The notes beneath the pieces are model-generated. The model saw only the letters and a program-made list of their open reading frames with translations. It had not been told where the DNA came from and made no database searches. The translations under genes were made by a program, and so were the position numbers. Below, piece after piece: positions 1,380 to 59,030 of a stretch of 64,000 nucleotides of DNA (the first letter of the stretch is position 1; every line of letters starts with the position of its first letter). The DNA is from Macrostomum lignano (Eukaryota), in NCBI GenBank assembly GCA_002269645.1, contig NIVC01000570.1:62001-126000 (forward strand), read 5' to 3'.

Positions 1380-14911
<13,532 letters not shown>

Positions 14912-28305: not shown

Positions 28306-28350
28306 ATCCTTCTGAGCCATCAAACAAAGACCCGAGTCCATACTTTGCAG

Positions 28351-31300
28351 AGGGGGATAATCGCCCCAACGCCCAAGCGGCTGCGCGATCTGATCCGCGA
28401 GATCCGGTCGGCCCGCACCGCAGCAGAGGAGCGCGCTGTAGTGAACAGGGAATGCGCCCAGATACGGGACAGCTTCCGCGAGGAGGACAACACTTATAGG
28501 TGCAGGAATGTGGCCAAACTGCTGTATATCCACATGCTGGGCTATCCGGCGCACTTTGGCCAGATGGAGTGCCTCAAGCTGGTTGCGTCGCCGAAATTCA
28601 CTGACAAACGAATTGGCTATCTGGGCGCTATGCTGCTATTGGACGAGCGCACCGATGTGCACCTGTTAGTGACTAACTCGGTGAAGAACGATATGAATCA
28701 CGGCACCCAGTACATAGTTAGTCTGGCCCTATCCACCTTGGGCAGCATCTGCAGCGCCGAGATGAGTCGAGATCTTGCGGGCGAAGTGGAACGCTTAGTC
28801 AAGTCTAGCAATGCATATATTAGAAAAAAGGCCACTTTGTGCGCTTTGCGAATTATCCAGAAGATACCGGACCTGATGGAGGTGTACATCCCGTGCGCTA
28901 GGTCGCTGTTGAATGAGAAAAATCACGGTATGTCTTCTGTACTATAGGTATTTTGGTTATTTGCTTGACTGCTTGATTAATATTGAGCAATTCATTTAAT
29001 AAGCAAAGGTAATGTCACTTGATTTAGGAGTGTGTTGATTAGTTGAGGAGCCGCGTGTGTTACATTGGGTGTGACTGAATTTGATTGGTTGAGGAGCCGC
29101 GTGTATACATTGGGTGTGACTGAATTTGATTGGTTGAGGAACCGCGTGTGTACATTTGGTGTGACTGAATTTGATTGGTTGAGGAGCCGCGTGTGTACAT
29201 TGGGTGTGAATGAATTTGATTGGTTGAGAAGCCGCGTGTGTTACATTGGGTGTGACTGAATTTGATTGGTTGAGGAACCGCGTGTGTTACATTGGGTGTG
29301 ACTGAATTTGATTGGTTGAGAAGCAACGTATGTACATTGGGTGTGACTTCAGGAATTTGATTGGTTGAGGAGCCGCGTGTGTTACATTGGGTGTGACTGA
29401 ATTTGATTAGTTGAGAAGCAACGTATATGTACATTGGGTGTGACTGAATTTGATTGGTTGAGAAGCAACGTATGTACATTGGGTGTGACTGAATTTGATT
29501 GGTTGAGAAGCAACGTATGTACATTGGGTGTGACTGAATTTGATTGGTTGAGAAGCAACGTATGTACATTGGGTGTGACTGAATTTGATTGGTTGAGGAG
29601 CCGCGTGTGTTACATTGGGTGTGACTGAATTTGATTAGTTGAGAAGCAACGTATATGTACATTGGGTGTGACTGAATTTGATTGGTTGAGAAGCAACGTA
29701 TCTACATTGGGTGTGACTGAATTTGATTAGTTAATGAGCAGCGGGAAGCAGGAGCTGAGGAGTTGAGGAGCAGCGTGTGGTTTGTGCAGCAAGGTTTGTG
29801 GCTAGCTGTTGAATAATAATGAAGTCATAAATTGTTGCAGGCGTACTGCTCACCGCCGTGTGCCTCATCTCGCAGATGTGCATTCTCAGCGTTGACACAC
29901 TGAACCACTTCAGACGGGTATGCAAAGCTTTTCGATTTTAACTGTCGATCAATATTAGTCTTTGTTATTAAATCAGAGCTCTGTTGTGTCTTAGTTGCAA
30001 ATATTTATACAATATCTAATTATATAATGCATATTTTCTTGCCTGTGGTTACCAGACTTTATTTAGCATTAGCATAGACCTGATATTACAGTTGTACACC
30101 TATCTATCTATCATCTATCTAAATATACTAAATCTATTCTATAGTTCATAGTTCTGTGATTAATAGTGCACATACACCTTGCCTGTGCACTGAAAACAAT
30201 GAATATACACTCAATTCGAAACCTATGAAACAGTGGGAGTTGGTTGCTTGGAAGCACTGGGGCGTAATGCACAATCACCAATAGTATTTTAATTGGTACA
30301 AAAATTAGTTAATATTCACCTTTACCTTGCTAGTGTTGTATGATATTACCCTGAACTTAAAGTCCCTGCATTTAAATTCGACACCAATTTTTGCAGTGCA
30401 ACGATGGCGAGGTAAGCATTTAATTGATAGCAGTATGAATGGCAAGGTGTTAATTTGTAAAAACCAGAGGCACTGTCGCTTTGCGTTTGAACCCTGCAAA
30501 CACTTTGTCCTAAAATTTTATTGTCAATCAATAATATACACTCAGATTACCGATTTTTTTCGGTCGTCGCCTTAGACAACCACCCCAGGATTATCAGTCG
30601 TCCCCGTCAGCCAGCCACCCCAGGATTATCAGTCGTCCCCGTCAGCCAGCCACCCCAGGATTATCAGTCGTCCCCGTCAGCCAGCCACCTCAGGGTTATC
30701 GATTTTCCAGTCGTCCCCGTCAGCCAGCCACCCCGGGTTATCGATTTTCCAGTCGTCCCCGTCAGCCAGCCACCCCATGGTTATCGATTTTCCAGTCGTC
30801 CCCGTCAGCCAGCCACCCCATGGTTATCGATTTTCCAGTCGTCCTCGTCGGCCAGCCACCCCAGGGTTATCGATTTTCCAGTCGTCCCCGTCAGCCAGCC
30901 ACCCCAGGGTTATCGATTTTCCAGTCGTCCCCGTCAGCCAGCCACCCCAGGGTTATCGATTTTCCAGTCGTCCCCGTCAGCCAGCCACCCCAGGGTTATC
31001 GATTTTCCAGTCGTCCCCGTCAGCCAGCCACCCCAGGGTTATCGATTTTCCAATCACCTGCCCATTTTACCCATTTTACGCATTGTTTTGCACGCTCTGG
31101 TTACTGATTTTTTGCCGAAACTGGCCCTTGTTTTTTAATGCAACCCACTTCATTATGTCCATGATCTTATAGGACTGGGGGTTGCAAAGAAGCATTAATA
31201 AATAGGAATTGGTACTCTTAAATCGTTTTAATAATCTTATTTAATATTAGTTTATTTATACACACTCAAGCTATTAAATTTAACTAAAAAGCAACTAAAA

Positions 31301-34300
31301 ACTTATATTGAAAGTTTTTGAGTAATATTTTTATTTGTAAAGCATGCATTTTTGGTAAGAAAATATTAATTTTATTTAGTGTTGTTAGTTTTTGATAAAT
31401 CTAAATACTATTACGTTCACAAAGGTCGATTTTCGTGTTGTGACTCGTTTGAAAATGAAAATCAGAAAAAAAAGATTTTTTATAACTACGAGATATTAAA
31501 AGAAGAATATGCTCAGCTCAGAGCTGCTAGCCAATCACAGCAGGGTGAAGTGGGGCTGTTCAATCTAATTTTCTACCCTCTTGTGATGGCTGTCTTGGGA
31601 TTGAGAGTCACGTTAGCAGCGTATACCACAGAATATTCTGTGGCGTATACTGCTGCGTACAAACCGCTGCGGACTCTGCTTAACCTGCAGTTCTGGCGGC
31701 GCCTATTTTTCATGCGTAAATTTAAAAACGGATTGCTTTTCATAAGTGGATTTCCAACCCTCATTATTTAAGGCACTCAACAATGCAATAAATATTTAAA
31801 TTTTTTACCAACTTTGTTTTTTGTTCAGCTGGTGCCCAACTTGGTGAGAATTCTCAAGAACCTCATCATGTCCGGCTTCTCGCAGGACCACGATGTCAAT
31901 GGCGTTAGCGACCCCTTCCTGCAGGTGAGTGAGGGGTGGGATGGGAGTGAATGCAGGTGAGTGAGGGGTGGGATGGGCGTGAATGCAGGTGAGTGAGGGG
32001 TGGCATGGGACTGAATGCAGGTGAGTGAGGGGTGAGATGGGCGTGAATGCAGGTGAGTGAGGGGTGAGATGGGAGTGAATGCAGGTGAGTGAGGGGTGAG
32101 ATGGGCGTGAATGCAGGTGAGTGAGGGGTGGGATGGGAGTGAATGCAGGTGAGGGGTGGGATGGGCGTGAATGCAGGTGAGTGAGGGGTGGGATGGGAGT
32201 GAATGCAGGTGAGGGGTGGGATGGGCGTGAATGCAGGTGAGTGAGGGGTGGGATGGGCGTGAATGCAGGTGAGTGAGGGGTGGGATGGACGTGAATGCAG
32301 GTGAGTGAGGGGTGGGATGGACGTGAATGCAGGTGAGTGAGGGGTGGGATGGGAATGAATGCAGGTGAGTGAGGGGTGGCATGGGAGTGAATGCAGGTGA
32401 GTGAGAGGTGAGATGGGAGTGAATGCAGGTGAGTGAGGGGTGGGATGGGAGTGAATGCAGGTGAGTGAGGGGTGGGATGGGAGTGAATGCAGGTGAGTGA
32501 GGGGTGAGATGGGAGTGAATGCAGGTGAGTGAGGGGTGGCATGGGAGTGAATGCAGGTGAGTGAGGGTGGGATGGGCGTGAATGCAGGTGAGTGAGGGGT
32601 GAGATGGGAGTGAATGCAGGTGAGTGAGGGGTGGGATGGGAGTGAATGCAGGTGAGTGAGGGGTGGCATGGGAGTGAATGCAGGTGAGTGAGGGGTGAGA
32701 TGGGAGTGAATGCAGGTGAGTGAGGGGTGGCATGGGAGTGAATGCAGGTGAGTGAGGGTGGGATGGGCGTGAATGCAGGTGAGTGAGGGGTGAGATGGGA
32801 GTGAATGCAGGTGAGTGAGGGGTGGGATGGACGTGAATGCAGGTGAGTGAGGGGTGGGATGGACGTGAATGCAGGTGAGTGAGGGGTGGGATGGGAGTGA
32901 ATGCAGGTGAGTGAGGGGTGGCATGGGAGTGAATGCAGGTGAGTGAGAGGTGAGATGGGAGTGAATGCAGGTGAGTGAGGGGTGGGATGGGAGTGAATGC
33001 AGGTGAGGGGTGGGATGGGAGTGAATGCAGGTGAGTGAGGGGTGGGATGGGAGTGAATGCAGGTGAGGGGTGGGATGGGAGTGAATGCAGGTGAGTGAGG
33101 GGTGAGATGGGCGTGAATGCAGGTGAGTGAGGGGTGGGATGGGAGTGAATGCAGGTGAGTGAGGGGTGGCATGGGAGTGAATGCAGGTGAGTGAGGGGTG
33201 AGATGGGAGTGAATGCAGGTGAGTGAGGGGTGGCATGGGAGTGAATGCAGGTGAGTGAGGGGTGGCATGGGAGTGAATGCAGGTGAGTGAGGGGTGAGAT
33301 GGGCGTGAATGCAGGTGAGTGAGGGGTGAGATGGGAGTTAATGCAGGTGAGTGAGGGGTGGGATGGGCGTGAATGCAGGTGAGTGAGGGGTGGGATGGGA
33401 GTGAATGCAGGTGAGGGGTGGGATGGGCGTGAATGCAGGTGAGTGAGGGGTGGCATGGGAGTGAATGCAGGTGAGTGAGAGGTGAGATGGGAGTGAATGC
33501 AGGTGAGTGAGGGGTGGGATGGGAGTGAATGCAGGTGAGTGAGGGGTGGCATGGGAGTGAATGCAGGTGAGTGAGGGGTGAGATGGGAGTGAATGCAGGT
33601 GAGTGAGGGGTGGCATGGGAGTGAATGCAGGTGAGTGAGGGGTGGCATGGGAGTGAATGCAGGTGAGTGAGGGGTGAGATGGGCGTGAATGCAGGTGAGT
33701 GAGGGGTGAGATGGGAGTTAATGCAGGTGAGTGAGGGGTGGGATGGGCGTGAATGCAGGTGAGTGAGGGGTGGGATGGGCGTGAATGCAGGTGAGTGAGG
33801 GGTGGGATGGGAGTGAATGCAGGTGAGGGGTGAGATGGGCGTGAATGCAGGTGAGTGAGGGGTGAGATGGGAGTTAATGCAGGTGAGTGAGGGGTGGGAT
33901 GGGCGTGAATGCAGGTGAGTGAGGGGTGGGATGGGAGTGAATGCAGGTGAGGGGTGGGATGGGCGTGAATGCAGGTGAGTGAGGGGTGGGATGGGCGTGA
34001 ATGCAGGTGAGTGAGGGGTGGGATGGGAGTGAATGCAGGTGAGGGGTGGGATGGGAGTGAATGCAGGTGAGTGAGGGGTGGCATGGGAGTGAATGCAGGT
34101 GAGTGAGAGGTGGGATGGGAGTGAATGCAGGTGAGTGAGGGGTGGCATGGGAGTGAATGCAGGTGAGTGAGAGGTGAGATGGGAGTGAATGCAGGTGAGT
34201 GAGGGGTGGGATGGGAGTGAATGCAGGTGAGTGAGGGGTGGGATGGGAGTGAATGCAGGTGAGTGAGGGTGGGATTGGCGTGAATGCAGGTGAGTGAGGG

Positions 34301-37300
34301 GTGAGATGGGAGTGAATGCAGGTGAGTGAGGGGTGGGATGGGAGTGAATGCAGGTCAGGTGTGGGATAGGGGCAATATGAAAACACCTTTAGATAGTACA
34401 TTAGTTTTAATTAATTCTAGACTACTCCAAACCTGTATGCAGGTAAAGATTCTGCAGCTGCTCCGCATTCTGGGCCACAACGATCAGTCTGCCAGCGAAC
34501 AGATGAACGATATTCTAGCGCAGGTGAGACCAGCTTTATCGTTAGAGTACTAGTAAATGTACTTTTATAACTTAGTTTGCGTTTGAGTTCAAAGTTCTCT
34601 TACAGTTTTTTTTCTTGTTAATTCAATGTTTCCGCGGTTTTCAATATATAGCACCCGTTGCCGTCGCCCTATTGCTGCTTTCAGGTGGCCACCAATACTG
34701 AGACATCGAAAAACGTTGGGCACGCAATTTTATACGAAATTGTTCTGACCATCATGGGCATTGAGTCGGAGTCTGGACTGAGGGTAAACTTTATAATGTA
34801 TATATTAGCTAGCATGCCATAGTTCGATACAGTGTATTCATAGATTTTTTTACATTTTTGCCTAACATGTCTTGTTTAATTTATCTGATAGTTGCCTCTA
34901 ATATTAACACTAATTGCTTCTTTTGTTGTGGTTGGCTGGGGAAAATGCAGAGGAAACTTCTAGAGAAGAGACAGACTGGCAGACGGACGGGACAAAACAT
35001 GAAAGCGCAGATGGATGAAAAGACAGACACAGACGTATAGACAGACAGGCATGTAGGTCAATGAATGTTCAACCTCGCTTCATTTGTGAGCCAGGCGGCG
35101 CAAGTTTGGTATGACATCATCCATTAGTGGCTGTCCATCTGTCTGCTTGTTTTTTCGTTACACTCGCTCTGTTTCGAGTCGTCGGTAACTACATTTTTGG
35201 CCACCGCTTCTGAATTGGGTTGAGATTTCCAAATTACTTGGATAGCCACCCTTACAGAGGCTACAGACAGGTAGACAGACAGACAGACAGGCAGACAGAC
35301 AGGCAGGCATGTAGACAGGTAGACAGACAGACAAACAGAAAGACAGACAGGCAGGCAGGCATGTAGACATGTAGACAGACAGACGGGTATGTAGACAGGT
35401 AGACAGACAGACAGGCAGGCAGGCATGTAGACAGGTAGACAGACAGACGGGTATGTAGACAGGTAGACAGACAGACAGGCAGGCAGGCATGTAGACAGGT
35501 AGACAGACAGACAGACAGGCAGGCAGGCATGTAGACAGGTAGACAGACAGACGGGTATGTAGACAGGTAGACAGACAGACAGGCAGGCAGGCATGTAGAC
35601 AGGTAGACAGACAGACAGACAGACAGGCAGGCAGGCATATAGACAGGTAGACAGACAAACAGACAGATAGACAGACAGACAGACACTAAGGAAAGACAGA
35701 CACTAAGACAGACAGGCAGACAGACAGGCATATAGACAGGTAGGCAGACAGTAGTATAATTATGATGATGCGCTAGCAATTACTAAGACGCCACCTTGTA
35801 TGTAAGGGCTGTGATTCTTTAACGGAAAACTAGCCTATGAATGTACTAATATATTGCCTTCCATATATTGCTTAAAAGGGTCCCTATGCAAGGTAGCTTA
35901 TTTTATTACGTCTCTGGTGCAGATATATCGAAAGATCAACCAAATATAATTCCCAAAAAAGGCGGCCACGCACACCGATTGCCGCTATCACTCGGGCCGG
36001 GCTGTGCTGCACGAGTTAACCCTGACCATAGCGGGACTGGGCAGGGCTGCTGAGCCCGCCCTGAGGGTAACGATTGCCCTAATAATGCTCATAATATCAG
36101 CCAAATAACGTTATCGTTATAGAAATTTGCTTTTTCACATTGTTCCCAAGTTAGAGTTAGTAAAATAGTTTGTTTTTTTAATTGTTTTTTTAAATGAAGT
36201 ATGACGTTAGTCGTTATTTGAGGACCATGATTGTGTCAGTTCCGTTGGGTTGGTACGTCTGTCGAATGGAATGTGAGTGGGACAATGCACTGAGTGACCT
36301 CGGGTTGCTTTCTGAGTGACCTCGGGTTGCTCTCTGAGTGACCTCGGGTTGCTCTCTGGGTGACATCGGGTTGCTCTCTGAGTGACATCGGGTTGCTCTC
36401 TGGGTGATCTGAGCTTGCTCTGAGTGATCTGAGCTTGCTCTGAGTGATCTGAGCTTGCTCTGAGTGATCTGAGCTTGCTCTGAGTGATCTGAGCTTGCTC
36501 TGAGTGATCTGAGCTTGCTCTGAGTGATCTGAGCTTGCTCTGAGTGATCTGAGCTTGCTCTGAGTGATCTGAGCTTGCTCTGAGTGATCTGAGCTTGCTC
36601 TGAGTGATCTGAGCTTGCTCTGAGTGATCTGAGCTTGCTCTGAGTGATCTGAGCTTGCTCTGAGTGATCTGAGCTTGCTCTGAGTGATCTGAGCTTGCTC
36701 TGAGTGATCTGAGCTTGCTCTGAGTGATCTGAGCTTGCTCTGAGTGATCTGAGCTTGCTCTGAGTGATCTGAGCTTGCTCTGAGTGATCTGAGCTTGCTC
36801 TGAGTGATCTGAGCTTGCTCTGAGTGATCTGAGCTTGCTCTGAGTGATCTGAGCTTGCTCTGAGTGATCTGAGCTTGCTCTGAGTGATCTGAGCTTGCTC
36901 TGAGTGATCTGAGCTTGCTCTGACTGAACTGAAGCAAGGGTCAGCAGCCCAGAATTCATAATCAATAATAGGACTCCAATTCACCAACGCCGCTGTGCAG
37001 GTGCTGGCCGTGAACATACTCGGCCGTTTCCTGCTTAACAACGACAAAAACATTCGCTACGTGGCCCTGAGCACGCTTCAACGAGTTGTACACGCCGACT
37101 ACAACGCTGTGCAGCGTCACCGCACCACCATAGTCGACTGTCTGCGCGATCACGACGTCAGCATTCGCCGGCGCGCTATGGAGCTCTGCTTCGTGCTCAT
37201 CAACGCCCAGAACGTGCGCGGCATGGCCAAAGAGATGCTGCAGTTTGTAGCCGACTGCGATGTTGAATTCAAAGCCGATTGCTGCTCAAACTTGGCCATC

Positions 37301-39615
37301 GCGGCCGAACGATTCGCGCCGAACAAGCGCTGGCACGTGGACACGCTGCTCAAGCTGCTGTCTACAGCCGGTAATCACGCCAGGGATGATGTTGTTGTCT
37401 CACTTGTGCAGCTCATCAGCGAGCAGCCCTCCTATCAGGCCTACGCTGTGCACCGCCTGGCTGAGGCCTGCTCCGATGATGCCACTCAGCAGCCGCTAGT
37501 GCAGGTGGCTTGCTGGTGCATCGGCGAATACGGCGACCTGCTCATGGCCGACTGCTGCGCCGACGAGGTGGAGAGCTTCCAGGTATGTGCTGTGGCTAGA
37601 CTAGCCTCCATAGCTCCACCTCTTTCCAATGCGTCTACCTATCTCTTCCCTAGTCTGTCTACCCTACCTTTTTCTCTACCCAAACTGTCTATCATATCTA
37701 CCTCTCTCCTTAAACTGTCCACTGCATCTTACTTCTTTCCCCAGTCTTTATATACGGCCGGCATCTACCTCCCCCCCACCAATCCACCTCTCTCGAATCT
37801 GTCTACCAATTCCGTTTACCTCATGTTCTATTTCTCAAGCTGATTTATAAATATCAATCCGATCATCTCCCTCCCTCTCCAATCCGCGCCCCGCAGGCCC
37901 GCCAGCCAATGGAAGTTGTCCAGCTGCTCGAACGCGCCCTAATATCAGCCGGCAGCCGCCCAGTAACCAAACAGTTCGCCCTCACCGGCCTGATGAAGCT
38001 GTCGGCCAGACTGTCCAACTGTCCGGACGCCGTGGCCCGCGTGCGCAGCCTCACCAGCCGGTACGCGGCCAGCTGCGAGCTGGAATTGCAGCAGCGCTCG
38101 GCCGAATTCTGCGCCATCTTTCAGCATCACGAGAGCCTTCGACCGGCTCTGCTAGAACGAATGCCGGTGATGGAGGGCCGGGCAGAGAGCGGCCGGGATC
38201 TGCCCGATGACATGCAGCAGCCGCAACAGCAGATTAACCAGCCTCAGCCTGAGGCTCAGCATCAGCTAAATCTGATCGATGTCATATCTGACAGCAATCC
38301 GAATCACCAACCGGCTCCTCAGCCAGTTAGCAATCTGTTTGATTCGCTTATTAATCTGGATAATGAGCCAGTTGCGCCTAGCCCTAGCAACGCGCTTAGC
38401 AACGGTAGCGCTACTGTGCCGGCAGCTCAGCATCCGCAGTCGCCGCAGCAGCCGCCGCCGCAGCAGCAGGACAATTCGCTGCCGTCTGTAACAGCCTACG
38501 AGCAGCCGGGCGGCCTGCGTATCACTGTGCAGGGCTCTCGGACACCCGGCTCCACCACGTCTAGCCTCACCTTCCGAACTGTTAATAGCGGCCAGGTCCC
38601 GCTTACTGCCTATCTGCTGCAGGTGGCCGTGCCTAAATCGCTTCAGCTGTCCATTGCTCCAGCCTCGTCTGATTCTGTGCCGCCTAATCAGGCTGAAGCT
38701 GTCACTCAGGTGGCTCAGATCACCAACTCCAACGGGGTGAGTTGCTACAATCCTGCAGGCCTGTCTGACCTTCGATTGGTCTCTGCTACCCTCCTACCCT
38801 TCCTTTGTCTATCTGATTGACCTCTGCTGATCTTCAGTTGACCTCTGCTACCCGCCCTCTTGTCTGTCTGACCTTCAATTGACCTCTGCTACCCGCCCTC
38901 TTGTCTGTCTGACCTTCAATTGACCTCTGCTACCCGCCCTCTTGTCTGTCTGACCTTCAATTGACCTCTGCTACCAGCCCTCTTGTCTGTCTGACCTTCA
39001 ATTGACCTCTGCTACCCGCCCTCTTGTCTGTCTGACCTTCAATTGACCTCTGCTACCCGCCCTCTTGTCTTTCTGACCTTCAATTGACCTCTGCTACCCG
39101 CCCTCTTGTCTGTCTGACCTTCAATTGACCTCTGCTACCCGCCCTCTTGTCTGTCTGACCATCAATTGACCTCTGTAACCAGCCCTCTTGTCTTTCTGAC
39201 CTTCAATTGACCTCTGCTACCCGCCCTCTTGTCTGTCTGACCTTCAACTTACCTCTGTTACCAGCCCTCTTGTCTGTCTGACCTTCAATTGACCTCTGCT
39301 ATCCGCCCTCTTGTCTGTCTGACCTTCAATATACCTCCGCTACCCTCCTGCCAGCCTGCCTGACCTTTAATTGACCCGAACCAATTAATTTTTTATTGTG
39401 GTAAAGCTTACAGTGTCAATAAGCTCGCCACTATGCTATTTACTGCAATCAGACAGTGAGTTAGTAGTTTATCATCGCCTATACAATTATGAATTCGCAT
39501 AACGCAGGCCCAACTGAAGCTACGCCTGCGCATCAGCTATTCAATCAACGGGAAGCCGGTCACCGAGACCAAGGACGTTGCCAATTTTCCGCCAGCCTAC
39601 TGGCAGCGGCAGTAG
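28351..39615 (+). CDS. AP1G1: AP-1 complex subunit gamma-1 (gamma adaptin), ~820 aa; the start codon is on an unidentified upstream exon or leader
   Basis: Exons 28351-28927, 29841-29917, 31829-31924, 34443-34523, 34685-34783, 37001-37582, 37897-38736 and 39508-39615 total 2460 nt in frame. They encode the hallmark [42 protein letters not shown] and ELQQRSAEF motifs plus the C-terminal GAE ear. Confidence 0.96.
29030..29732. repeat. 35-38-bp minisatellite (TACATTGGGTGTGACTGAATTTGATTGGTTGAG...), ~19 units
   Basis: Tandem units of two sub-types (GAGCCGCGTGTG and AAGCAACGTATG). Confidence 0.93.
30580..31055. repeat. 35-bp to 43-bp minisatellite (CAGTCGTCCCCGTCAGCCAGCCACCCCAGGGTTATCGATTTTC)
   Basis: The first units are 35 bp; later units carry an 8-bp insertion. 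Confidence 0.93.
31921..34346 (+). repeat. 32-bp G-rich minisatellite (GCAGGTGAGTGAGGGGTGGGATGGGAGTGAAT), ~75 units, each containing the exon/intron junction sequence
   Basis: The first unit overlaps the true donor CTGCAG|GTGAGT at 31924/31925. The array fills ~2.4 kb of a 2.5-kb intron. Confidence 0.97.
35063..35750 (-). mobile_element. Microsatellite-carrying dispersed element, copy 2 (inverted relative to copy 1)
   Basis: 35063-35270 is the reverse complement of 2885-3075, followed by an AGAC/AGGC/GTAG compound microsatellite. Confidence 0.75.
36292..36925. repeat. 22-bp then 20-bp minisatellite (TCTGAGTGATCTGAGCTTGC), ~26 identical 20-mers
   Basis: Direct inspection; ends ~75 nt before the acceptor at 37000. 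Confidence 0.96.
38765..39365. repeat. 41-bp minisatellite (TGACCTCTGCTACCCGCCCTCTTGTCTGTCTGACCTTCAAT), ~14 units
   Basis: Tandem units in the last AP1G1 intron. Confidence 0.95.
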
Positions 39616-44760: not shown

Positions 44761-45227
44761 AGAGTTGACCGACACTTTTAATTGATTTTTACTCTGAACA
44801 ATAAATATCTTTCCTGTTAATAATAGCCATTTACCTGTCTGATTATTAACTAAAGCTGTACATAGCAGTTTCACTTGTTATAACTGTTAATAGATGAATT
44901 GATTATATTTATAATTTGCTTGATGGATTGAATTAATTGATTTTACTTCATCTAACAGTTTTATTCGCATATCTGAAATGCTGATTGTTGCTTTTGATGA
45001 AGGAAGCCGGATTTTTAGTCCTTTGGTAACACAGCTCGTGTGTTTAGCGTGACTTGCTAAGCAGTGCAAATTCAAGCTTGAGGCCCGGCTATCGTGTTTC
45101 CTATCCTAATCAGCCCTGCTTTTTTAGCCTGCAAATCTGAGTTTAACCAGGTCTGCAATTTGCAGTTGAGTTAGTTTAGGCTGTTGGAATGTATAAATAT
45201 AGAAATATCGGTTGTCGGTGGACAGAC

Positions 45228-45738
<511 letters not shown>

Positions 45739-46934: not shown

Positions 46935-47125
46935 GAGTACTCGTTAGGTTGGGTTCTTTTGTTAGACTGGTACTACCAACAGTACGAGTATTAAGTACAT
47001 TGGGTTCTTTTGTCAGACTGGTGCTACCAACAGTACGAGTATTAAGTACATTGGGTTCTTTTGTCAGACTGGTGCTACCAACAGTACGAGTATTAAGTAC
47101 ATTGGGTTCTTTTGTCAGACTGGTT
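46935..47125. repeat. 51-bp tandem repeat (GACTGGTGCTACCAACAGTACGAGTATTAAGTACATTGGGTTCTTTTGTCA), ~4 units
   Basis: 17-aa periodicity in the ORF track; direct inspection. Confidence 0.9.
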
Positions 47126-47855: not shown

Positions 47856-50800
47856 TCACCAGACCGAGCACTTATCAATCGGATTCATTTTCGAGCCCGG
47901 TCGGCAGCCGAAAGCTCGTCCAAATTCGGGCATGTTGGCCACGGGGCCCCAGGGGTAGTTCTCAAATTAAGGTCATGATGTTTTGGTACAGAAAAAAAAG
48001 TTTTTGAATAAAGTAATTATTTTGCAAAAACGATTCTTTCGTCAATTTAATTAAAAAACTGCCGTTAAAACCACAAGAAACCAAATATTTAAGACGAAAT
48101 CTAGCAATTTGTTATTTTTCGCAACGGAAAATAAAACGACCAAAAATTGTGAAATAATGCAAGTTTTCTTTTATTTTTTTATAAATTAGATACATCTTTT
48201 ATTCTATGTTTACTATTTAATAAGTATTATTTCAATAGAAAATGTTATTTTTAAATCAACATTTTGTTTTTTTCGTATAAATTGCTTGTATTTAAAATTA
48301 TCGCGTAACAAGAAACACCCGAAATAATTGATATTGTACCACTCAAGAATTTAATATTGTACTTAAACACCGAAATATGATGCTTAAAATATACAAAACT
48401 GGTTTAGCTAAAAATTAGGCTTGCAAAATATGTCTTTTAAAGCATTAAAAGTTTTTTTGAATTAGAATATATATAGTAAACGAGCTAGGAAGCCATTTCT
48501 TTTAAAACCTAAAATGCATGTATCTTTTTTCGAACAGACTTGCGTTTTTTTTTAAAATAACTCAGCAAGCATTTATATTCTGCAACATAGCTTTAATACT
48601 ATTTTACTATTTTACTATACTATTTTCTTATGCTGCATAACTACTAAAAGAACAGCTTATAAATTTAAATTAAATACTTTGGTCTTGGTAAGTTAATTAG
48701 CCTATTACAGACGTCTGACTCGGCAGCCACATGGATCACTGCAATTGCTCTGGCGAACCTCTGTAATCGATTCTGGCCCTGCACTAGCTGTCATGCTCGG
48801 TATACAATTCGTCTCATTTGATAAATTACGTCGATGCCTGCAGAACTAACCACATCCAAAGGACCACTGCACATCTTAGCATTGTGGCACATACAATGAT
48901 GCTGGTGTTCTGGCAGAGAAACAGGTAAAAGTGCAGCAAATGGCATTACATATCCGTCCGAGAGGTGTGCAGTTTACAGTGCTTTAGCCAATTGGGTCAG
49001 TAGAATTAAATCGATCACATTAGAATAAAAGTAGATGTTCGCTGTACATGTAACAAACCAATAGCAAGACACTATTGGATGTCTTTCCCTTTTACTGATG
49101 CTCGTACATCAGCTGGCTGTCTCCACAGGCCACAGCTCATCGCATTCTCTGTTAACCGCCGCTTCAGTGCTGTCAGCCGCACTTAACTGTGTCTGGCCTC
49201 GGTATATAGAGTCAGTCCCAATGGAAAATCATCATCTAAAACATATCTAAAGCGTAATTGTCAATCGAAGAGTAATATAAAATATAGTATGTCTGTTATG
49301 GTACTGCCATGACTAATTTGTTAAACACTTCACAAATTCGTGTGGCAGCACTCTGTAGAGATTCCATCTTTCTGTACCATATTTAATATTACATTGCCAG
49401 CATCAATGGCAATTAAGTTTTTTCTTTTGTCTTTTTTCTTGTTAGTAGCTATATGCATCCAAAGGTGGAAAGTATCAACTGAATGTTTAAGTTGCTACAT
49501 ATATATCTTTAATGAATTGCAGAACATATGAGAATGAATTTAATGTTTCAAAGAAATTAATTTTTTGTGCTTCAGACAGCTAATTTCATAGATAATAAAT
49601 CAGATGCAAAATTGTTTTTATACTATTTCTTGACTAATCAAATCATGCAACTTTTTTATTATTCGTTACTCTTATTTTCTTTTCAGTTTCTACTACCTCT
49701 TGTTTTGACTCATTATGTTTACTTGTAACTTACAATACAAATTTTAAATCAGTTAAAAAAATTGTGTGAAAACAACAAAAAACGACTGTTTTTAAGAGAA
49801 AAATAGTCAATTTTATCTACATAAATGAAATTCTGTTTGTTCTGACTAACATATTGGGTGATTAATAGCAAAAATTCATCTAAATACGAGCGTACATAAA
49901 AAACATCCAAAAAACCTAACAATATGCTGAGAAATTTTTTTTTCATAACTAGAGACAAAAAAGTGGTACTTTTTCTCATCCCACAGATGAGGACTTTAAA
50001 TTAAAATAACTTTGGTGCTACTTGCTTTGTTGTAGTCAGCGAAATCTCTCTTTGTTAGGTTAATTTTGTGCTATTGAAAAAAACTTAAAATTGAATTTAT
50101 TTAACTTTTCTTTTTTAATATAGAATGAAACTGCCTTAATTGATACTTTAGTGTTAGATATGACTATCTTTCTTAAAAAAACAGCAGAAAACGCAGCTAT
50201 TAGCTTATTCTATCAACAGAACAAATTAATTAGAAGTGCATTTTTTAATCATTCATAATGTTACGTTTCTAGCAAAAATCGAAATAGCAACATCTGCTTT
50301 GCAATCGAAAGAGTTAAATGGGTTCTAGGTTGTGTTAACCAAAGTTATAAATAAAATTTATCAATTTTCTTCTTTAATAAGACCACGTGAACAGAATGTA
50401 GCTTCTCTAAAGTGGGTATTATAGCTCGTGCGATAATAAAAATATATATCGAAAAATGAAATAGCGCACTCTGATGAGATTAACATCAAAAGTTCAATGT
50501 TAAAAAAGATTAAGACCCATGAGAGGCATATATTTTTTAAGTCCTTTTAGAGCTAAAATAAGAAAAGATTCAATATTTCAGGCTGATTTTCAAAAATATT
50601 TGTTTCACTGCTTACGACTAAACTTTGAGAACGACCCCCAGACTCGCATCTGGCCTGGCGGGTGTGTGTTCACCGTAATTAACTGGCGCAGCGCCTCCGG
50701 GGTGATCAGCTCGCACCAAGTCTGTGCAGAGCACGATGTGGGTTCGAGTGTTGTTGCAAGCATAATAATGGTTTTACCAGGCTAACTAGCTGCCTATTTA

Positions 50801-53800
50801 ATACAAAAAATGTTTCGTTTCTAATCGCCTACTTATAAGCCCATTGTGTGCGAATTACTGCCGGATTTTGCGATGACACGTGAGATTTGTCGACTTTGGT
50901 CATAGACAGGAGCTTGGAACCAATAAAAACCCAGATTACGCTTCACTAGCTGTATCCTGTATGCTATGAATTTTTACAAATGAAGACTTATGAAAACTCC
51001 AAACGGACGTCCATAGTGTTTTAGTGTTTTAGACCTCATCTATATGTAAACTGACCCGGCCTATAATGATCGGAAATGACCTGTACTGCTGCTGGCCTGC
51101 CACGATCAATCTTGACCTGACCTCAAACAAACAAATATTCGCAAGAGGATTGTTGGGCACCCTGGTAGAACATTGTCTCACAAGCGCTTAGACAATTCTG
51201 CCCATTCCGCTTACTCCTGAGCATACAAGCGCGCAGATACTGAACTCAGACACGCACGTATACACACTCACTCGGCCCCTTTTGTACAGCGGCCCTGACT
51301 TTCTAATTATCAGGGATGTACAATCTCTGTGCCTTGGGGGTTGGGCCTCACGGCTGTGAATTGCAGCCGCCCCCCACCCACTAATTTTCGTCCACAAGCC
51401 CCAATTGAATATTGTGGCCTTGCGCAGAATCGAACCACCAAGGAGTCATGACGCGAAAGTCAGACGCGCGTTTACCGCTGGGCTGCTCTGCCCCTCTGAC
51501 CAGACCCCACTTAGCCTTTTCAAACAAAGTCGAACACTTGACTTGACACGCCCTAAGAAGACTTTGAATTGTTAATTAGGCAAATTCAAAACTGCAGAGT
51601 ACGCACCTGCGCGTAGGCAAGGAACAGAACCTGCTCTCGGCTGTACCGATCGCCAAGGTAGGGCAGCAGCGGTTCGTCAGGTTTCTGTTGCTGCTTGTAG
51701 GCCTACGGGATTCGGGAGAAGGCGATGTTAGGAATGAAGTCAAGGTCATGCAGCTAGGTTGAGATCATGGCACTTTAACAAGATACGACGACATAAATTC
51801 AAGGTATAGAAATGAATATTAAGTCGTATTCAAGGTGGGGGCATCATATTTTCACAGTCTGCAGAGCACCATTGTTCCGAACTGAGGTCAACGTTATACC
51901 TGTAGGTAACTTTTACATTAGAATAAGACATGGTCAATTCGTAATTCTAAATGTACACTAAGTTCAGAAAATGAGTTCCAGGTCATGGAATAAAGTATGC
52001 ACATCAAAGTCGGTGTGACGGAATGAGGATATAAAGTGTGACGTAATAAACGTCAATGTCACAAGAGAAAACCAATTGTTACCCATTGTTAGTCAAAGTC
52101 AACGGGGTTGAATACAAACACCCTGAGGTTTCATTATAAAGAATGAAAATCTCACCCGGTATGCCATCTTTAGTCCACCGTTATCGGCGATGCTCTCACC
52201 CAGCACCAGCTGGCCGCTGACTTGAACGTTGCCATCAACCGTGAACGCTTCGTACTGTCTGTAAAAAGTTTTTTTATGCTTATACAACACCAAGAGTAAA
52301 AAACAGGTATAGTAAATTTATTACGACTGTCTGCAGTCTATCAGTCTCTCCACCGCCTGTCTGCATGTCTTCTTGACTTATCTTGGTGTCAGTTTTAGTG
52401 TCTAGGTCATAGGATTTGTATATCACTGTCGTTAATTGAAATGTGGCACAATGTGGTCAAGATTTCTCAAGCCTTTAGTGTGATTAAGAGTCCTGTCTTA
52501 CTGTGTCTGTGCCTATCTCAATTTGTCTTTAAGACTTTTGCATTGTGTCAATAGTTTCTGTCTAATTGTGTCTAAAAGACTGTTGTCTTGTGTCCTTAGT
52601 GTCCGTCTTACTGCTTCTTAAAGACTTTTATTGTGTCCTTAGTGTCTGTCTTACTGTGTCTAAAAGACTGTTGTATTGTGTGTGTCCTTAGTGTCTTTCG
52701 TATTTTCACACTGCTTATCTTATTGTGTCTTAGAGACTGTTGCATTTGGTTCCTTAGTGTCTTAGTGTCTTATTTGCACACTGCCTATCTAATTGTGTTT
52801 TAGTGCCTGTCTCTGTGTTTACTCGTGCCTCTCAGCATATTCAACAAGGATTTACAACAAAGCTTACTAATAAGTGTAGCAGTTAACAAACCTGGCAATG
52901 CAGTCGGTGGCCCTGTCGAACGCGGCAACGGTGCCATTGCTCCACCATTCCCGCTTATTGCCGTCCCTGTCGTGGTGCCGGCCGCTGTCATCGAAGCCGT
53001 GCGTGATCTCGTGCCCGATGACGGCTCCGATGGCGCCGTAGGACACGTAGGCTGGGAACTGCGGCCGGTAGAACGGCTGCTGCAGGATGCCGGCGGGGAA
53101 GGCGATGGCGTTGAACGAAGGCGAATAATAGGCATTCACAGACTGCGGAGTCATGCCGAAGGTCAGCCGAACCGGCTCGGATAGCCGGGACAGAGCCTGC
53201 GGACAGAGGAGGGAGCGGCTTGTCAAGAATCTTCTTCTAGTACTCGTAGAAACGAAACTTTCAAAGAACTTTTGGCTGGTAAACGCCAATTGCTCTTTCT
53301 ACAAGACAGCGGATAACCCTATCAGTGATAATCTACTCTGAGTAGACAGCGGAAAACTCAAATCCCACACTAGCCGCTCACTTACCCTGTTAGTGCTCTC
53401 CCGTTGAATCTGCACCACATTGTCAAAGTAGCGATCCGGCCGCAGTCGGTAGCCGCCCAGCTCCCTACGCAGCTCGGTGGCATTGTTGAAATAGTGCGGA
53501 TAGCCAACCAGGCGGCGGATGGCGTCCAGCTTGCCGACGGCCTGGCGACGCGTGGCCTCGTCCATCCAGCGGGCATCTGCTAAGCTAGCATTGAACGCGG
53601 CCATAAGGCTGTCAATCAATCGCTCAATCGCCGAATGCGAGTCTCTTAGAAAGTAACTGTCGACAAATAATTTGCCCAATGGAAAGCCGAAAATGCCATC
53701 AACGGATTGGACGCAAATTTTCCAGGGCGCTTCGGTGCCGTGGACTCCGCGTATTCTGTAGGTGAGCTTCTCCGGGATACGGTAGGCGGCGGGGGTGGTG

Positions 53801-56800
53801 AACGGAAGCAGCGGCCAGATGCTGCGCACCAACAAGTAGTTGTTGACCAGCCTGCGATTGATGGGGAGGGGGGCAGTCGACCAGCAAGGGGGCAAGCAAT
53901 TATGCTACGGGCGTGAATCGCTCGACCCCGGCAAGCCTCCGCAAACCATCCTGCACAAGGCACTTCGGGTACTTGTACTTGAAATAGGGACTAAAAGCCA
54001 AGGCCATATAAAACTGGGTTGCTGAACCCCCGGTTAATTTGACATCTCCCCCAAGGAACAAAATTTTATTATTCTCGTTTGTTGGCATTTTCGAGCTTTT
54101 GAACTTTAATAAAGCTAGTTTAATACGAGAAACGGTTTTGGAAAATTAATAAAAACACCAGAAGAATTCAAGGTCAAAAGCATCACGAATCACGACCAAA
54201 GATGGCTAATCTCGCCACTAACACTGACTTCGTGGTCCGGCCGGGTTACTTTGAACATGTACTATTATTCGGTCGCACAAGCGCGACAAAATCCTGGACG
54301 ACCACCATAAAATAACTTGGAAAATGCATGCATTGCCAAACTTGCAGACTTGCGCTCACCGAGTCTGCTCCGCATCAGACGAAAGCTGATTTAGCAGCGG
54401 ACACAACTGCTCAAAGAAGGATCGATCGTGAAGATTTACCGGAGTATCGTTCGTAATTGCGTAGCTTGAGTTGCTCAGTAGCGTCAGCAGCACACTGGTC
54501 CAGTTTATCTGCGTGGGGGATTCGGCAGCACTCTTTGAGCTGAAGATGGCGCAGGCCACTGAAGGATCTGGGAGTGGTGAGGGTCACTGAAGGATCTGGG
54601 AGTGGTGAAGGTCACTGAAGGATCTGAGAGTGGTGAAGGTCACTGAAGGATCTGGGACTGGTGAAGGTCACTGAAGGATCTGGGAGTGTTGTAGGTCACT
54701 GAAGGATCTGAGAGTGGTGAAGGTCACTGAAGGATCTGGGAGTGGTGAAGGTCACTGAAGGATCTGGGAGTGTTGTAGGTCACTGAAGGATCTGAGAGTG
54801 GTGAAGGTCACTGAAGGATCTGAGAGTGGTGAAGGTCACTGAAGGATCTGGGAGTGGTGAAGGTCACTGAAGGATCTGGGAGTGTTGTAGGTCACTGAAG
54901 GATCTGAGAGTGGTGAAGGTCACTGAAGGATCTGGGAGTGGTGAAGGTCACTGAAGGATCTGGGAGTGGTGAAGGTCACTGAAGGATCTGGGAGTGGTGA
55001 AGGTCACTGAAGGATCTGGGAGTGATGAAGGTCACTTAAGGATCTGGGAGTGGAGAGGCGAAGACGGTAAAGGATTTGAGAGAATAAATACTTAGTGATA
55101 TCTCACACAGGGAAAATCCTCCTGCAACTGCTTAATCGTGGAGTTCCCCATTAGCAGGGAGCCGCGCCTCTTCCATTCGGGCAGAGAGATCTGTGGTGTA
55201 GAAAAATTGCGGAGAAAGTGCCTGTCTGTTTCTCTGTTTGTCGATGCTTACTAAGACGCAGACACTATGGCAGTAAGGCATTTGGACACTACAATAAGAC
55301 ACTAGAGACTCTACAACACTAAGACACTAAACCAAAAAGCACTACAAACGCTACTATGACACCAGGACACAACAACATAAAGACATCAGCACATTAAAAC
55401 ATTAGGACAAAACAAACACTAATACTAAAGCATTAAAGAAAACTAAGAGACCAGAACTAATGTAGTATTTTAGTGGCCGAGTGTCTTAGTGTTGTGGCGT
55501 CCTGGTGTCTACGAGCTAAGTGTTGTACGAGATAGTGTTCCCCCGATGTGTCTTACTGTTGTAGTATCCTGATGTCTTAGTTTACACGCTACAACACTAA
55601 GACACTCAGAGAACAAAACGGTCAAACCTCCGCAATCTTGCGCTCCAGTTCGATAATATTCCTGACATCCTGGGCAGTCATAGTCAGGCCAAACAGTTTC
55701 GCCAGTTCTTCAAGCGACTCTGCCAGAGCGGCCAAATTCGCCGTCCGATTGTGCACGTAGTCATCGCGCAGAAGCAGCGTGCTGGACTGGCTGAGGTGAA
55801 CTGCGCGTCGCTTGGTGTTGAAGATGTCAACCGTGACACCGAGGTAGAAGAATGGCGGATTCTCCGAGTGGGCAGCGGAGAACACGGCGGATCTGAGCAG
55901 GCCGTCGGCTATAGTCCAGCCATCCTTGTAGGCCCGGGCGGTGGCGTTGCAGGCGGCCCAGGGCCCGACTGGAGCCACCAGGTCCAGCAGCGGCTGCAGG
56001 CCCGCCTCCTCTCTGGCGGATTCGTTAAGGCAGGACCGGTAGAGCGCGGCCAGGTTGGACCGCAGCTCAGCGTTGATGTCGGCGTCCGCTGACACTGATG
56101 GAGAGGCGGATTCTGCAGACAGAATTGGCAGGAAGTTGGAGTTTTCTTAATACTTGAATTGCAATAAGAATACCAGAATAGCTTAGGCATAACTCAGCTT
56201 TGCAGCGCCTAAGACTGTCAAGATACCTGAGCCGCGCGCCCCGAGAATTCGAAAAGCTCTAATCATCTTGTGCGCAATTTCCGCACCATTAGCTTGGCTG
56301 AAATACCCATTCAAGGCACAAATTTAGCTAAATTTTCTTAGAAATGAAGCCTCTCATTGTTCTTAATGCCATTCGCAGATATTACACACTCTAGGCTTTG
56401 CTCTAGGAAAATGTAGAAAAATTATCCATCGAGAGAGAGAAAAAATCGAAGACCAATCGAGCAGCCGCCGCCCTCACCCAGCAGACTGCGCAGTAGAATC
56501 TCATTAGCTCCGGACTGCAGGCTGAACACGTTGGCCTGCTGCCGCCCAGCCGGAATGGTCACCCGTTGGCGAAATAATCCGCACGAGAATTCGTAAAAAT
56601 CTTCGCACGGATCGGCAGATTCGTTCATGTAGGACAGCAGCCGGGCGGTTAGCTGGACGCACACCGGATGTGTACAAGTGGCTGGCGGGTGGGTGAACAC
56701 GCGGAAATCAGACGCTGCGTTGTTATTGCAACCCAATTTGCTAAGCTGGATGGGAATTAAGCCTGCCTATTGCAACCCTATTCGCTAAGCTGGATGGGAA

Positions 56801-58673
56801 TTAAGCCTGCCTATTGCAACCCGATTCGCTAAGCTGGATGGGAATTAAGCCTGCCTATTGCAACCCGATTCGCTAAGCTGGATGGGAATTAAGCCTGCCT
56901 ATTGCAACCCGATTCGCTAAGCTGGATGGGAATTAAGCCTGCCTATTGCAACCCGATTCGCTAAGCTGGATGGGAATTAAGCCTGCCTATTGCAACCCGA
57001 TTCGCTAAGCTGGATGGGAATTAAGCCTGCCTATTGCAACCCGATTCGCTAAGCTGGATGGGAATTAAGCCTGCCTATTGCAACCCGATTCGCTAAGCTG
57101 GATGGGAATTAAGCCTGCCTATTGCAACCCGATTCGCTAAGCTGGATGGGAATTAAGCCTGCCTATTGCAACCCGATTCGCTAAGCTGGATGGGAATTAA
57201 GCCTGCTTATTGCAACCCGATTCGCTAAGCTGGATGGGAGTTAAGCTTGTCTATTACAACCCAATTCACTAAGCTGGATGGGAATTAAGCCTGTCTATTG
57301 CAACCCAATTCACTAAGTTGGATGGGAATTAAGCCGCCCTATTGCAATCCAATTCACTAAGCTGGGTGGGAGTACGATTCTGTACTAAGCCTGTCTACAG
57401 ATGTAAATCAATATAGAATAGTAATGTACAATATAGGTTGTTTTCAATCAGATACTAAGGGAGTTTGAGAAAAACATTACCAGAGGTTTGTGACTGTGGG
57501 ATGAGCTACCTTAGAAAGAACAGAAAAAAACGTTTCTTTTGGACAAGAAAACTTGAAAAGGACGCTGGTACTAATTTTTAAGAGGAACATTAGCCAGATC
57601 AAGCGGTTGTTAAGTCACAATCTCGCCGTGCTGTCGCTTGCAATTATAACAAAGCGGGTCAACGGTCAGGTCCAAAAGAAACTCTTTGATTGACACGTTC
57701 GACTGTTTCACAAAATCAACTGGATTCTAGAAGGAAGCGCCATGTCTGCTACTATTTTTAGCTTTCAAAGTTCGATCGTGAAGATTATTTGGGAAATCTG
57801 CAGGCTAATTGCCTATGGGAAGGACTTTTGGGAATTAACGGTCAAGTCGACTTGAAGTCCACAAATCTTATACGTGATGAACACTTTACTAAGAGTGGAA
57901 ATATTGCATAATTAAATAAGAGCCCTTTAAAGTGGAGTTCGTCTAGAAAACGCGGTCAAAGCTCTTTGGATCTCAGATACTTGGTAAGGGAGAGTGAATC
58001 CTCATGTATCTTAGGTAAGGGAGTCAGGAAGGATCGAAAGTAAGGGAGGGTTACAATTCTCACGGATCTCAGGTAAGGGAGTCATAATACTGAAGGATAT
58101 CAGGTAAGGGAGAGTCGCAATACTGAAGGATATCAGGTAAGGGAGAGTCAGGAAGGATCGAAAGTAAGGGAGGGTTACAATTCTCACGGATCTCAGATCA
58201 AGGATATTTTAAAGTTTACACTAACGCATCGAGTTAGCCACACACCTGGGGCACATCAGTAGAGGTTAAGAAGTGAATATTCTTAGAGCGTATACGAACA
58301 CGATATCAAACTCACAATTGGCACTGGCGGTGACATTGTACGGCTGATTGGCATATCCCAGCCGGCCAGAGGACGCGGTGAGGCGCACATTGTACAGCAT
58401 GCAGGCCAGAATCAATACTATCAGAAGCAGCACCAGCACCGCCAGTAGAGCCAGCTTTTCCAAGTAACTGCACCTCTTAATCACAACGCCCAGCCTGTGC
58501 AGGTGGGTGATGCGCCTTGGCTGGCTGACGCCGTTACCCGGACTGCCAACCGGCAGGACCGAGTCGTCGCTTTGCATGGCGGCCATGCTACTGCCGCCTG
58601 TGGCGCTGCTGTTTGTCGCCAGGCTGCCGCTCAGTTCGCTGTTGTCGTCCAGATCTGTGCGAACATATTTCAT
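47856..58673 (-). CDS. M13 zinc metallopeptidase (neprilysin/ECE-like, type II membrane), ~819 aa; last exon interrupted by a TIR element, so possibly a disrupted allele
   Basis: Exons 58673-58316, 56714-56478, 56112-55628, 55190-55107, 54508-54360, 53851-53386, 53196-52892, 52258-52156, 51702-51607 and 50721-50639 + 47949-47856 total 2460 nt in frame. Motifs: TM segment, DPCEDFYEFSCG, VNAYY, GHEITHGFD, GESIADNGG, THPP, MNPIDKCSVW*. The exon-2 acceptor is the least certain boundary. Confidence 0.92.
47952..50638. mobile_element. ~2.7-kb non-autonomous DNA transposon with 15-bp TIRs (GGGGTMGTTCTCAAA) and a short target duplication (CA, CAG or CCAG)
   Basis: GGGGTAGTTCTCAAA at 47952-47966 and TTTGAGAACGACCCC at 50624-50638 match at 14/15 positions. 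Both ends sit in CCAG. Excision restores the M13 reading frame. Confidence 0.85.
51182..51492 (-). mobile_element. tRNA-derived SINE, copy 3 (most complete)
   Basis: The minus-strand head reads AGCCCAGCGGTAAACGCGCGTCTGAC...GGTTCGATTCT; the body is shared with the other copies. Confidence 0.8.
52330..52800. repeat. Degenerate low-complexity tract built on CTTAGTGTCT; related tracts at 55260-55610 and ~35690
   Basis: Recurring TGTGTCYTTAGTGTC motifs without a fixed period. Confidence 0.6.
54558..55045. repeat. 28-bp minisatellite (CACTGAAGGATCTGGGAGTGGTGAAGGT), ~17 units
   Basis: Fills most of M13 intron 4. Confidence 0.95.
56730..57365. repeat. 44-bp minisatellite (ATTCGCTAAGCTGGATGGGAATTAAGCCTGCCTATTGCAACCCG), ~14 units
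   Basis: Abuts the acceptor of M13 exon 2. Confidence 0.95.
57965..58195. repeat. Degenerate repeat built on (GGATMTC)AGGTAAGGGAGAGTC
   Basis: About 7 irregular units, including a duplicated GAGTCAGGAAGGATCGAAAGTAAGGGAGGGTTACAATTCTCACGGATCTCAG block. Confidence 0.75.
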
Positions 58674-58769: not shown

Positions 58770-59030
58770 TACTGCAAGCGCGCAGATACTGTACGCATGT
58801 GCACTCATACACAGGCTCACGCAGGGTGTACAGCAGCCCTGAATTTTTAATCGTCAGGCATGTAAACTCTCTGTGCCTTCGGGGTTGGCCCTCACGACTG
58901 TGAATTTCATGACAGCCCCACTCATTTTCGTGCACACAAGCCCCAAATATATGTGGCCGCGCACGGAATCGAACCCAGGGTGGTCGTGGTGTGAGAATCA
59001 GATGAGTTTGTCGCTTGGCTGCTCTGCCCC
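58770..59030 (-). mobile_element. tRNA-derived SINE, copy 4
   Basis: Perfect B box GGTTCGATTCC on the minus strand (58965-58975); the body is shared with the other copies. Confidence 0.8.

Follow-up and report, generated by a model that had tools for sequence, protein, structure and literature searches.

What interrupts the last coding exon of a metallopeptidase gene in the flatworm Macrostomum lignano, and what becomes of the gene's message? The gene lies on the minus strand of a stretch of 64,000 nucleotides (nt) from contig NIVC01000570.1 of assembly GCA_002269645.1 (positions 62,001 to 126,000 of the forward strand), which we call the window and whose coordinates we use throughout. It encodes a peptidase of the M13 (neprilysin/ECE-like) type, and its last exon is split by about 2.69 kb of DNA bounded by terminal inverted repeats (TIRs). 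We regard it as highly likely that a transposon inserted into this exon, that it is spliced out at sites of its own, and that an intact sister copy of the gene has sheltered the damage. A first-pass annotation, made from the letters alone, had described a TIR element at this place; the minus-strand junctions that it quoted read letter for letter the same in the window, at the positions given.

Judged by its domains and motifs, all of which are found at full length, the host gene is a member of peptidase family M13. It extends on the minus strand from a start codon at 58673 to the original stop codon (TGA, 47858-47856), corresponds to BOX15_Mlig017057g1, and is supported by our exon model, by Pfam, and by a 99% identical deposited protein, PAA80706.1. 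Its 10 exons encode 808 amino acids (aa) once the element and one flank copy are removed, and this excised product matches PF05649 (Peptidase_M13_N) over positions 1-381/381 with 248 bits and PF01431 (Peptidase_M13) over 1-205/205 with 220 bits. The zinc-binding HExxH and ExxxD motifs are present as HEITH and GESIADNGG, and the nine introns other than the element (189-1,634 nt) follow GT-AG without exception, eight ending in CAG and one in TAG; the gene is thus otherwise intact, as the first-pass annotation had held. We set the exon boundaries manually, guided by homology, and PAA80706.1 and the 808-aa product of the sister locus, PAA77300.1, then validated them. A full-length protein search matched the gene to proteins of M. 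lignano; the 808-aa query recovered the species' own 100%-identical proteins, which a 206-aa C-terminal query had missed, its best match being only 52% identical, and a negative homologue search with a short conserved-domain query is accordingly not to be read as absence. Two minisatellites lie in the introns of the gene, at 54553-55053 (28 nt x 18 copies) and 56724-57371 (44 nt x 15 copies), and align with the sister locus in many registers.

The last exon begins at 50721, after the acceptor ctctgcacag|ACTTGG, and is broken by the element. On the minus strand the left junction reads ...CAG ATG CGA GTC TG|GGGGTCGTTCTCAAAG... (also GGGGTCGTTCTCAAAGTTTAGTCGTAAGCAG), and the right junction reads ...TTTGAGAACTACCCC|TG GGG CCC CGT GGC (also CCTTAATTTGAGAACTACCCC|TGGGGCCCCGTGGCCAACATG...). 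The sister locus (L001, NIVC01000753.1) reads ...GAGTCTGGGGCCCCGTGG... at the same point (also given as ATGCGAGTCTGGGGCCCCGTGG and ...ATGCGAGTCTGGGGCCCCGTGGCC...), and is therefore an empty site. Alignments of the window to L001 on the two flanks are 97-98% identical, stop exactly at the element ends, and overlap by the 6 nt CTGGGG; the window carries 2,689 nt more than L001 at this point. The 5' part of the ancestral last exon (50639-50721, minus strand), which ends in the left copy of the target duplication, and the 3' part (47856-47949, minus strand) are contiguous both in L001 and in the locus of a 49% identical paralogue (L003). The C-terminus of PAA77300.1 is exactly that of the filled copy after excision, so the canonical M13 ending predicted in the first-pass annotation from removal of the element and one target copy exists as a deposited protein. 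Across 13 homologues (animals and one bacterium) the excised junction aligns without gaps, with R33 and V34 invariant and G36 nearly so; the excised C-terminus aligns to the final residue of human ECE-1 (3dwb) and neprilysin (1dmt), and carries the conserved CxxGxxMNPxxKCxVW. The sister locus, 98% identical yet free of the element, proves that a TIR transposon inserted into the last coding exon of the M13 gene.

The element itself occupies 47952-50638 (minus strand) and is missing from the sister locus, the flanking alignment blocks ending at 50636 and 47952. Its boundaries are fixed by the empty site, independently of the TIRs, which nevertheless fall there: the left TIR, GGGGTCGTTCTCAAA (50624-50638, minus strand), and the right TIR, GGGGTAGTTCTCAAA in the plus-strand reading (47952-47966), match as reverse complements at 14 of 15 positions, with no similarity beyond those 15 nt. 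Complementarity of at least 14/15 has a chance of 4.3e-8 per register, or about 3e-7 across the 7 registers allowed by the shared CTGGGG, and was found in none of 200,000 random position pairs of the window; at up to one mismatch, the TIR 15-mer has just two sites in the 64 kb. The target duplication can be read in three ways: as TG (left copy 50640-50639) with 15-bp TIRs, as CTGG (50641-50638) with 14-bp TIRs, or as CTG (50641-50639) if the left end has an extra G. These are the CA, CAG and CCAG readings of the first-pass annotation, and all three remain. The element measures 2,687 bp with a 2-bp duplication and 2,686 or 2,685 bp with one of 3 or 4 bp.

Two hallmarks of Class II elements are present here, in that the TIRs abut the breakpoints of the empty site and CTGGGG occurs once in L001 and twice in the window; a multi-copy family or an autonomous partner was not found within the window, L001 and L003. 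A six-frame Pfam search of the element at E<=1 gave no match, and exact-product look-ups of the open reading frame (ORF) spanning the left junction and of one internal element ORF found neither on record. These results support a non-autonomous cut-and-paste (Class II, TIR) DNA transposon, devoid of coding capacity. Its GC content is 31% overall, with a core at about 49260-48700 of 45% GC and arms of about 26%. The core has no detectable coding or RNA homology, and no Rfam family was found in the whole window; it could be a captured fragment or a remnant of the regulatory region of an autonomous element.

Could the interruption instead be an ordinary ancient intron whose inverted repeats are coincidental, the outcome that the first-pass annotation had set against its own proposal? 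In favour of this, every other interruption of the gene is a normal intron of the sizes given above. However, no GT-AG pair restores the conserved RVWG junction, so that exact splicing is unavailable, as had been noted from the letters, and the TIR probability of about 3e-7 makes coincidence a poor account of the repeats. The last exon of the paralogue (P0122, from L003) starts at the same AQ|TWCE boundary and continues uninterrupted through ATGCGGGTGTGGGGGCCT to the stop, and the sister copy is likewise uninterrupted. Because the exon is whole even in a 49% identical paralogue, there is no ancient intron here; as reconstructed from these sequences, the ancestral last exon is one 177-nt piece without an old intron at this position. 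An ancient intron is ruled out by the empty site, and we give it practically no probability.

A single empty site does not by itself give the direction of change, and the insertion might be older than the gene duplication, with precise excision later freeing the sister copy of the element. Such excision is known of elements of the PIF/Harbinger type, among them mPing. Against this stand the uninterrupted exons of the distant paralogue and of all homologues, which make the empty state ancestral; the fully intact condition of the 94-nt exon piece stranded beyond the element, which has one difference from the sister, a synonymous one; and the pattern of coding change. The coding sequences of the two copies are 99.4% identical, with differences at 15 of 2,427 positions, 11 of them synonymous and 3 non-synonymous, as would follow from long purifying selection on both copies. 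The synonymous excess implies that purifying selection acted on the filled copy during most of the period after the split, and hence that the insertion is young relative to the duplication. Prior insertion with later excision is thus distinctly improbable, and we retain a recent insertion into one copy.

The two loci are probably recent duplicates, although they may alternatively be divergent haplotypes. Their introns and flanks differ by about 2-3%, more upstream, and the gene order (M13 peptidase, a protein of about 475 aa, alpha-adaptin) is the same in both. The genome of M. lignano is highly repetitive and redundant, with duplicated blocks of at least 95% identity totalling 180 Mb in the assembly, which the assembly paper explains by the extra large chromosomes that line DV1 carries (PMC5730564).

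We then asked what the filled copy's transcript contains. PAA80706.1 ends in ...RVWGSFSKFS|QLPLGPRGQHARIWTSFRLPTGLENESD* (also ...GQMRVWGSFSKFSQLPLGPRGQHARIWTSFRLPTGLENESD), a tail that is reproduced exactly by joining 50616 to 47960 and by no neighbouring register; the annotated range of the filled gene ends at 47875, at the stop codon of the shifted frame. As read from this transcript-derived model, the join removes a new GT-AG intron of 2,655 nt that lies wholly within the element (47961-50615, minus strand). Its donor, GTC|GTAAGC, has its GT at 50615-50614, 23 nt from the left element end. The acceptor, TTAATTTGAG|AAC (TTTGAG|AAC), has its AG at 47962-47961, inside the right TIR and 9 nt from the element end; it is the first AG downstream of a pyrimidine tract, CTTTTTTTTCTGT, at 48000-47988, and the only AG between 48035 and 47960. 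Two pieces of the element are kept in the mRNA: 23 nt of its left end, GGGGTCGTTCTCAAAGTTTAGTC (50616-50638, minus strand), which encode ..GSFSKFS in the tail of the deposited protein, and, at 47950-47960 (minus strand), the 9 nt AACTACCCC of its right end followed by the duplication copy TG.

The GenBank models of this assembly were built from RNA sequencing reads aligned by STAR and assembled by StringTie/TACO, and from de novo transcripts placed by BLAT, with ORFs called by TransDecoder (PMC5730564). In this coding sequence of transcript origin, 32 element nucleotides are fused to exon sequence on both sides. As element-derived coding nucleotides cannot originate from the intact copy, the splice is very probably real, and we consider it likely, on the deposited model, that the element is spliced as a new intron (50615-47961) in the filled copy.

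The same observation bears on whether the element is in the real gene at all. An assembly artefact or chimera could be imagined in so repetitive and redundant a genome (PMC5730564), the more so as the same PacBio data lie behind both public assemblies of M. lignano (PMC5730564). However, the flank duplication is perfect, the TIRs stand exactly at the breakpoints, and the 32 element nucleotides are joined in frame to exon sequence at both sides of the transcript-derived coding sequence. An older gene annotation also avoided the region: its protein for the same copy (UniRef A0A1I8FVM1) skips from ...ALRQLIT to a downstream ORF (YLQDGANFLRLNSPAESNQ, 47871-47683), a jump that is expected if the element was present in the earlier assembly too. 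An artefact is therefore very improbable. The locus as drawn from the contig (L002) is identical to the window across 26,126 nt. The A0A1I8FVM1 model (window about 63500-47683) further fuses an upstream low-complexity gene (63585-61375) to the M13 gene and takes an artificial C-terminus from an ORF past the real stop; it is apparently a mis-prediction provoked by the transposon.

Several points weigh against a spliced transposon insertion and temper our confidence in it. The splice is known solely through the deposited protein model, and its GAG acceptor is unusual beside the eight CAG and one TAG acceptors of the gene's other introns. Because both assemblies come from the same PacBio reads, the evidence for the junctions is not fully independent. 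The duplication length stays ambiguous at 2, 3 or 4 bp because target and TIR share G residues. Neither blastn with the element nor a fuzzy TIR search brought up a further copy in the window, L001, L002 and L003 (the window, L001 and L003 amounting to about 120 kb), the only hits being chance matches of 14-31 nt; and no transposase was found among the large window ORFs scanned against Pfam, which were those of a P450 and alpha-adaptin and others that are repeat-derived or unassigned.

If the splice is used as annotated, its product differs from that of the intact gene. The mRNA gains 34 nucleotides (23 + 9 from the element and 2 of duplicated target), a +1 frameshift, and the 3' part of the exon is read out of frame as ..GPRGQHARIWTSFRLPTGLENESD* up to a new stop, TGA, at 47877-47875. 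In place of the final 29 conserved residues, which align with the final 29 of neprilysin and of ECE-1, the 813-aa product has 34 unrelated ones; it loses both C-terminal cysteines and the terminal ..KCxVW, and hence the CxxGxxMNPxxKCxVW that the excised product keeps. Nor would an unspliced message do better: reading through into the element gives RVWGSFSKFSRKQ*, in which Peptidase_M13 is reached only to position 182/205 and the terminal cysteines are lost, as the first-pass annotation had also seen. The C-terminal cysteines of neprilysin form disulfides with distant parts of the chain, and the protein of the filled copy is, from its sequence, probably misfolded or inactive. Nonsense-mediated decay should spare the mRNA, since its new stop falls in the final exon; the intact sister copy would supply the function.

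The first-pass annotation had proposed two in-frame rescues, and neither corresponds to what was deposited: the annotated splice joins its second donor (C|GTAAGC) to its first acceptor (GAG|AACTAC), out of frame. It had also posed a choice between a recent knockout allele and a transposon being converted into an intron. Both descriptions hold at once and the alternative between them falls, as the model splices out most of the element and does so out of frame. A minor in-frame isoform might still restore function, for example by pairing the donor CGA|GTCTGG with the same acceptor (50644|47960) to give R-NYP-WGPV. Such a product would still cover PF01431 in full (1-205/205), scoring 215 bits where the intact form scores 220, and would share the acceptor of the annotated splice. 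Its donor, however, agrees with the consensus at just 2 of 7 positions, is followed 28 nt downstream by a far better GTAAG, and is unused in the deposited model. A second option on paper (50616|47914) would give ...KFSPFGC. These in-frame options need a much weaker donor or acceptor and neither is annotated, a single isoform being recorded for the filled copy; rescue by a minor isoform is unlikely.

We suggest the following course of events. An element of about 2.69 kb, with 15-bp TIRs starting GGGG, inserted at GAGT-CTG(G)-GGCCCC in one of two recent copies of the gene in line DV1. By chance it contained a good 5' splice site (GTAAGC), together with a pyrimidine tract whose next AG falls in the right TIR, and the spliceosome, going by the transcript-derived model, would use both sites to remove 2,655 of the 2,689 inserted nucleotides as a GT-AG intron. 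The 34 nucleotides left behind would shift the frame and scramble the C-terminus. Cover by the intact sister copy would explain why the insertion has persisted in a neopolyploid genome.

To what family might the element belong? NuwaI elements, of the PHIS (PIF/Harbinger-ISL2EU-Spy) assemblage, have CWG target duplications and TIRs of 12-61 bp that usually start with GGG (PMC4482050); the first-pass annotation had named the CWG duplications, and the publication bears it out. NuwaI-1_DRer, a non-autonomous member, is 2,531 bp long and has no ORF, and the hosts reported are fish, one beetle, one crustacean, one mollusc and one anthozoan, with no flatworms (PMC4482050). Our comparison is with the published description of the group. 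The element resembles NuwaI in its 15-bp TIRs, which begin GGGG and fall within the published length range, in a target readable as CWG (CTG/CAG), and in being of similar size and non-coding. It differs in lacking an ORF for DDE_Tnp_4 or Myb/SANT, and in that the 3-bp reading needs asymmetric ends: CTG flanks both element ends only if the left TIR has one G more than the right, and TG and CTGG fit equally. Its ends and flanks fit membership of NuwaI or PHIS, which on these features we would put tentatively at just under an even chance.

The main alternative is a superfamily with 4-bp duplications. More broadly, the element may come from outside PHIS/NuwaI, from a superfamily with a 4-bp (CTGG) or 2-bp (TG) duplication, such as Sola, whose elements make 4-bp duplications. 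The symmetric end readings favour this view, as they give either 2 bp with 15-bp TIRs or 4 bp with 14-bp TIRs and require no extra G on the left. Set against it are the GGG-starting TIRs and the C-W-G target core, which together form the published NuwaI signature (PMC4482050), and the misfit of two other groups, ISL2EU and Tc1/mariner, whose duplications are AT and TA, respectively (PMC4482050, PMC5199201). An origin in such a superfamily is possible, at rather less than an even chance.

The mechanism, imprecise splicing of an exonic cut-and-paste element at sites in its own ends, is already well known and established. Wessler and colleagues reportedly described, in the late 1980s, maize Ds and dSpm alleles in which the insertions are spliced from the pre-mRNA at cryptic sites in their ends, and Rushforth and Anderson are said to have shown in 1996 that Tc1 insertions in C. 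elegans are removed by splicing. Like these, the Macrostomum element is an exonic cut-and-paste element with splice sites in or near its termini, of which most is removed and a few nucleotides are kept, altering the frame. Unlike them, it is a naturally occurring allele in the reference genome of a flatworm, where it sits in just one of two recently duplicated gene copies; both of its splice sites are internal to the element, and the annotation records one isoform.

A second parallel is with introners, introns of transposon origin that have multiplied across the genes of Micromonas, Aureococcus, some fungi and others. Introners are multi-copy and are removed precisely or in frame, and the target duplication often completes a splice site. 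A fungal case is described in PMC4457414. The Macrostomum element shares with introners the conversion of a TIR-bearing DNA transposon into a spliceosomal intron within a coding exon, but it has one known copy (in about 120 kb), and splicing it out leaves a 34-nt remnant that breaks the frame. Nothing relevant was found in the literature on introners in Macrostomum, on M. lignano DNA transposons, or on these gene identifiers. The element might nonetheless be one of a family of non-autonomous PHIS transposons in Macrostomum that are splice-competent and whose genic insertions are routinely made into introns. The TIR itself would provide the 3' splice site TTTGAG|AAC, which lies 9 nt from an end in either orientation, and the subterminal sequence a 5' site. 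We consider such a family improbable.

The surroundings of the M13 gene hold further repeats. A dispersed repeat of about 300-470 nt, with 73-78% identity between copies, occurs in the window at 51150-51620, 58775-59030, 4796-4968 and 10804-11010 and in L001 at 17395-17868 and 9690-9899, placed in the intron just upstream of the last M13 exon and near the 5' end of the gene; as it occupies the same places in the sister locus, it predates the duplication, and ARAGORN found no tRNA in it. Downstream of the gene lie an (AGAT)n microsatellite of about 130 units and a 51-nt x 3.5 repeat (45224-45737, 46949-47124), which account for the long IYLS.. and repeated ORFs there. Between regions of L001 that align to window 60282 and 60290 is a segment of about 6.4 kb (L001 1863-8246) without a window counterpart. 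Two ORFs of 115 aa lie in it, inverted relative to each other (3435-3782 minus, 7158-7505 plus), a layout suggestive of a further insertion that has long inverted or terminal repeats.

Neighbouring genes in the window encode a cytochrome P450 (17924-20024, minus strand; PF00067, 8e-58) and alpha-adaptin (28345-38820, plus strand; Adaptin_N 4e-57, Alpha_adaptinC2 3e-13). Inside the limits of alpha-adaptin (28.3-38.8 kb, +), a 32-nt minisatellite, TGCAGGTGAGTGAGGGGTGGGATGGGAGTGAA, extends over 31920-34355 in 77 copies with 92% matches, and is the reason for the GC skew of +0.83 and the stacked long minus-strand ORFs of that interval. Each of its 32-nt units contains CAG|GTGAGT, a perfect 5' splice-site consensus.

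We conclude that the Macrostomum locus offers a clean and young example, backed by transcripts, from a flatworm with a neopolyploid genome: a fully documented natural case in which the filled site, its empty counterpart and a transcript-derived model recording the splice are all at hand, and in which a transposon in a coding exon was at once treated as an intron through its own splice signals. It shows both how such events usually fail, through a footprint that shifts the frame, and how they are sheltered when the gene is duplicated. For this species, Mlig017057.g1 and Mlig031358.g1 are not equivalent, as Mlig017057.g1 encodes a C-terminally scrambled, probably inactive peptidase; and at least one cut-and-paste element in the assembly has transposed since the genome's recent duplication and may still be mobile. 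Were the NuwaI assignment true, that group would be extended to flatworms. Were the element one member of a splice-competent family, redundancy would let out-of-frame insertions persist and evolve into clean introns, an introner-like gain in an animal.

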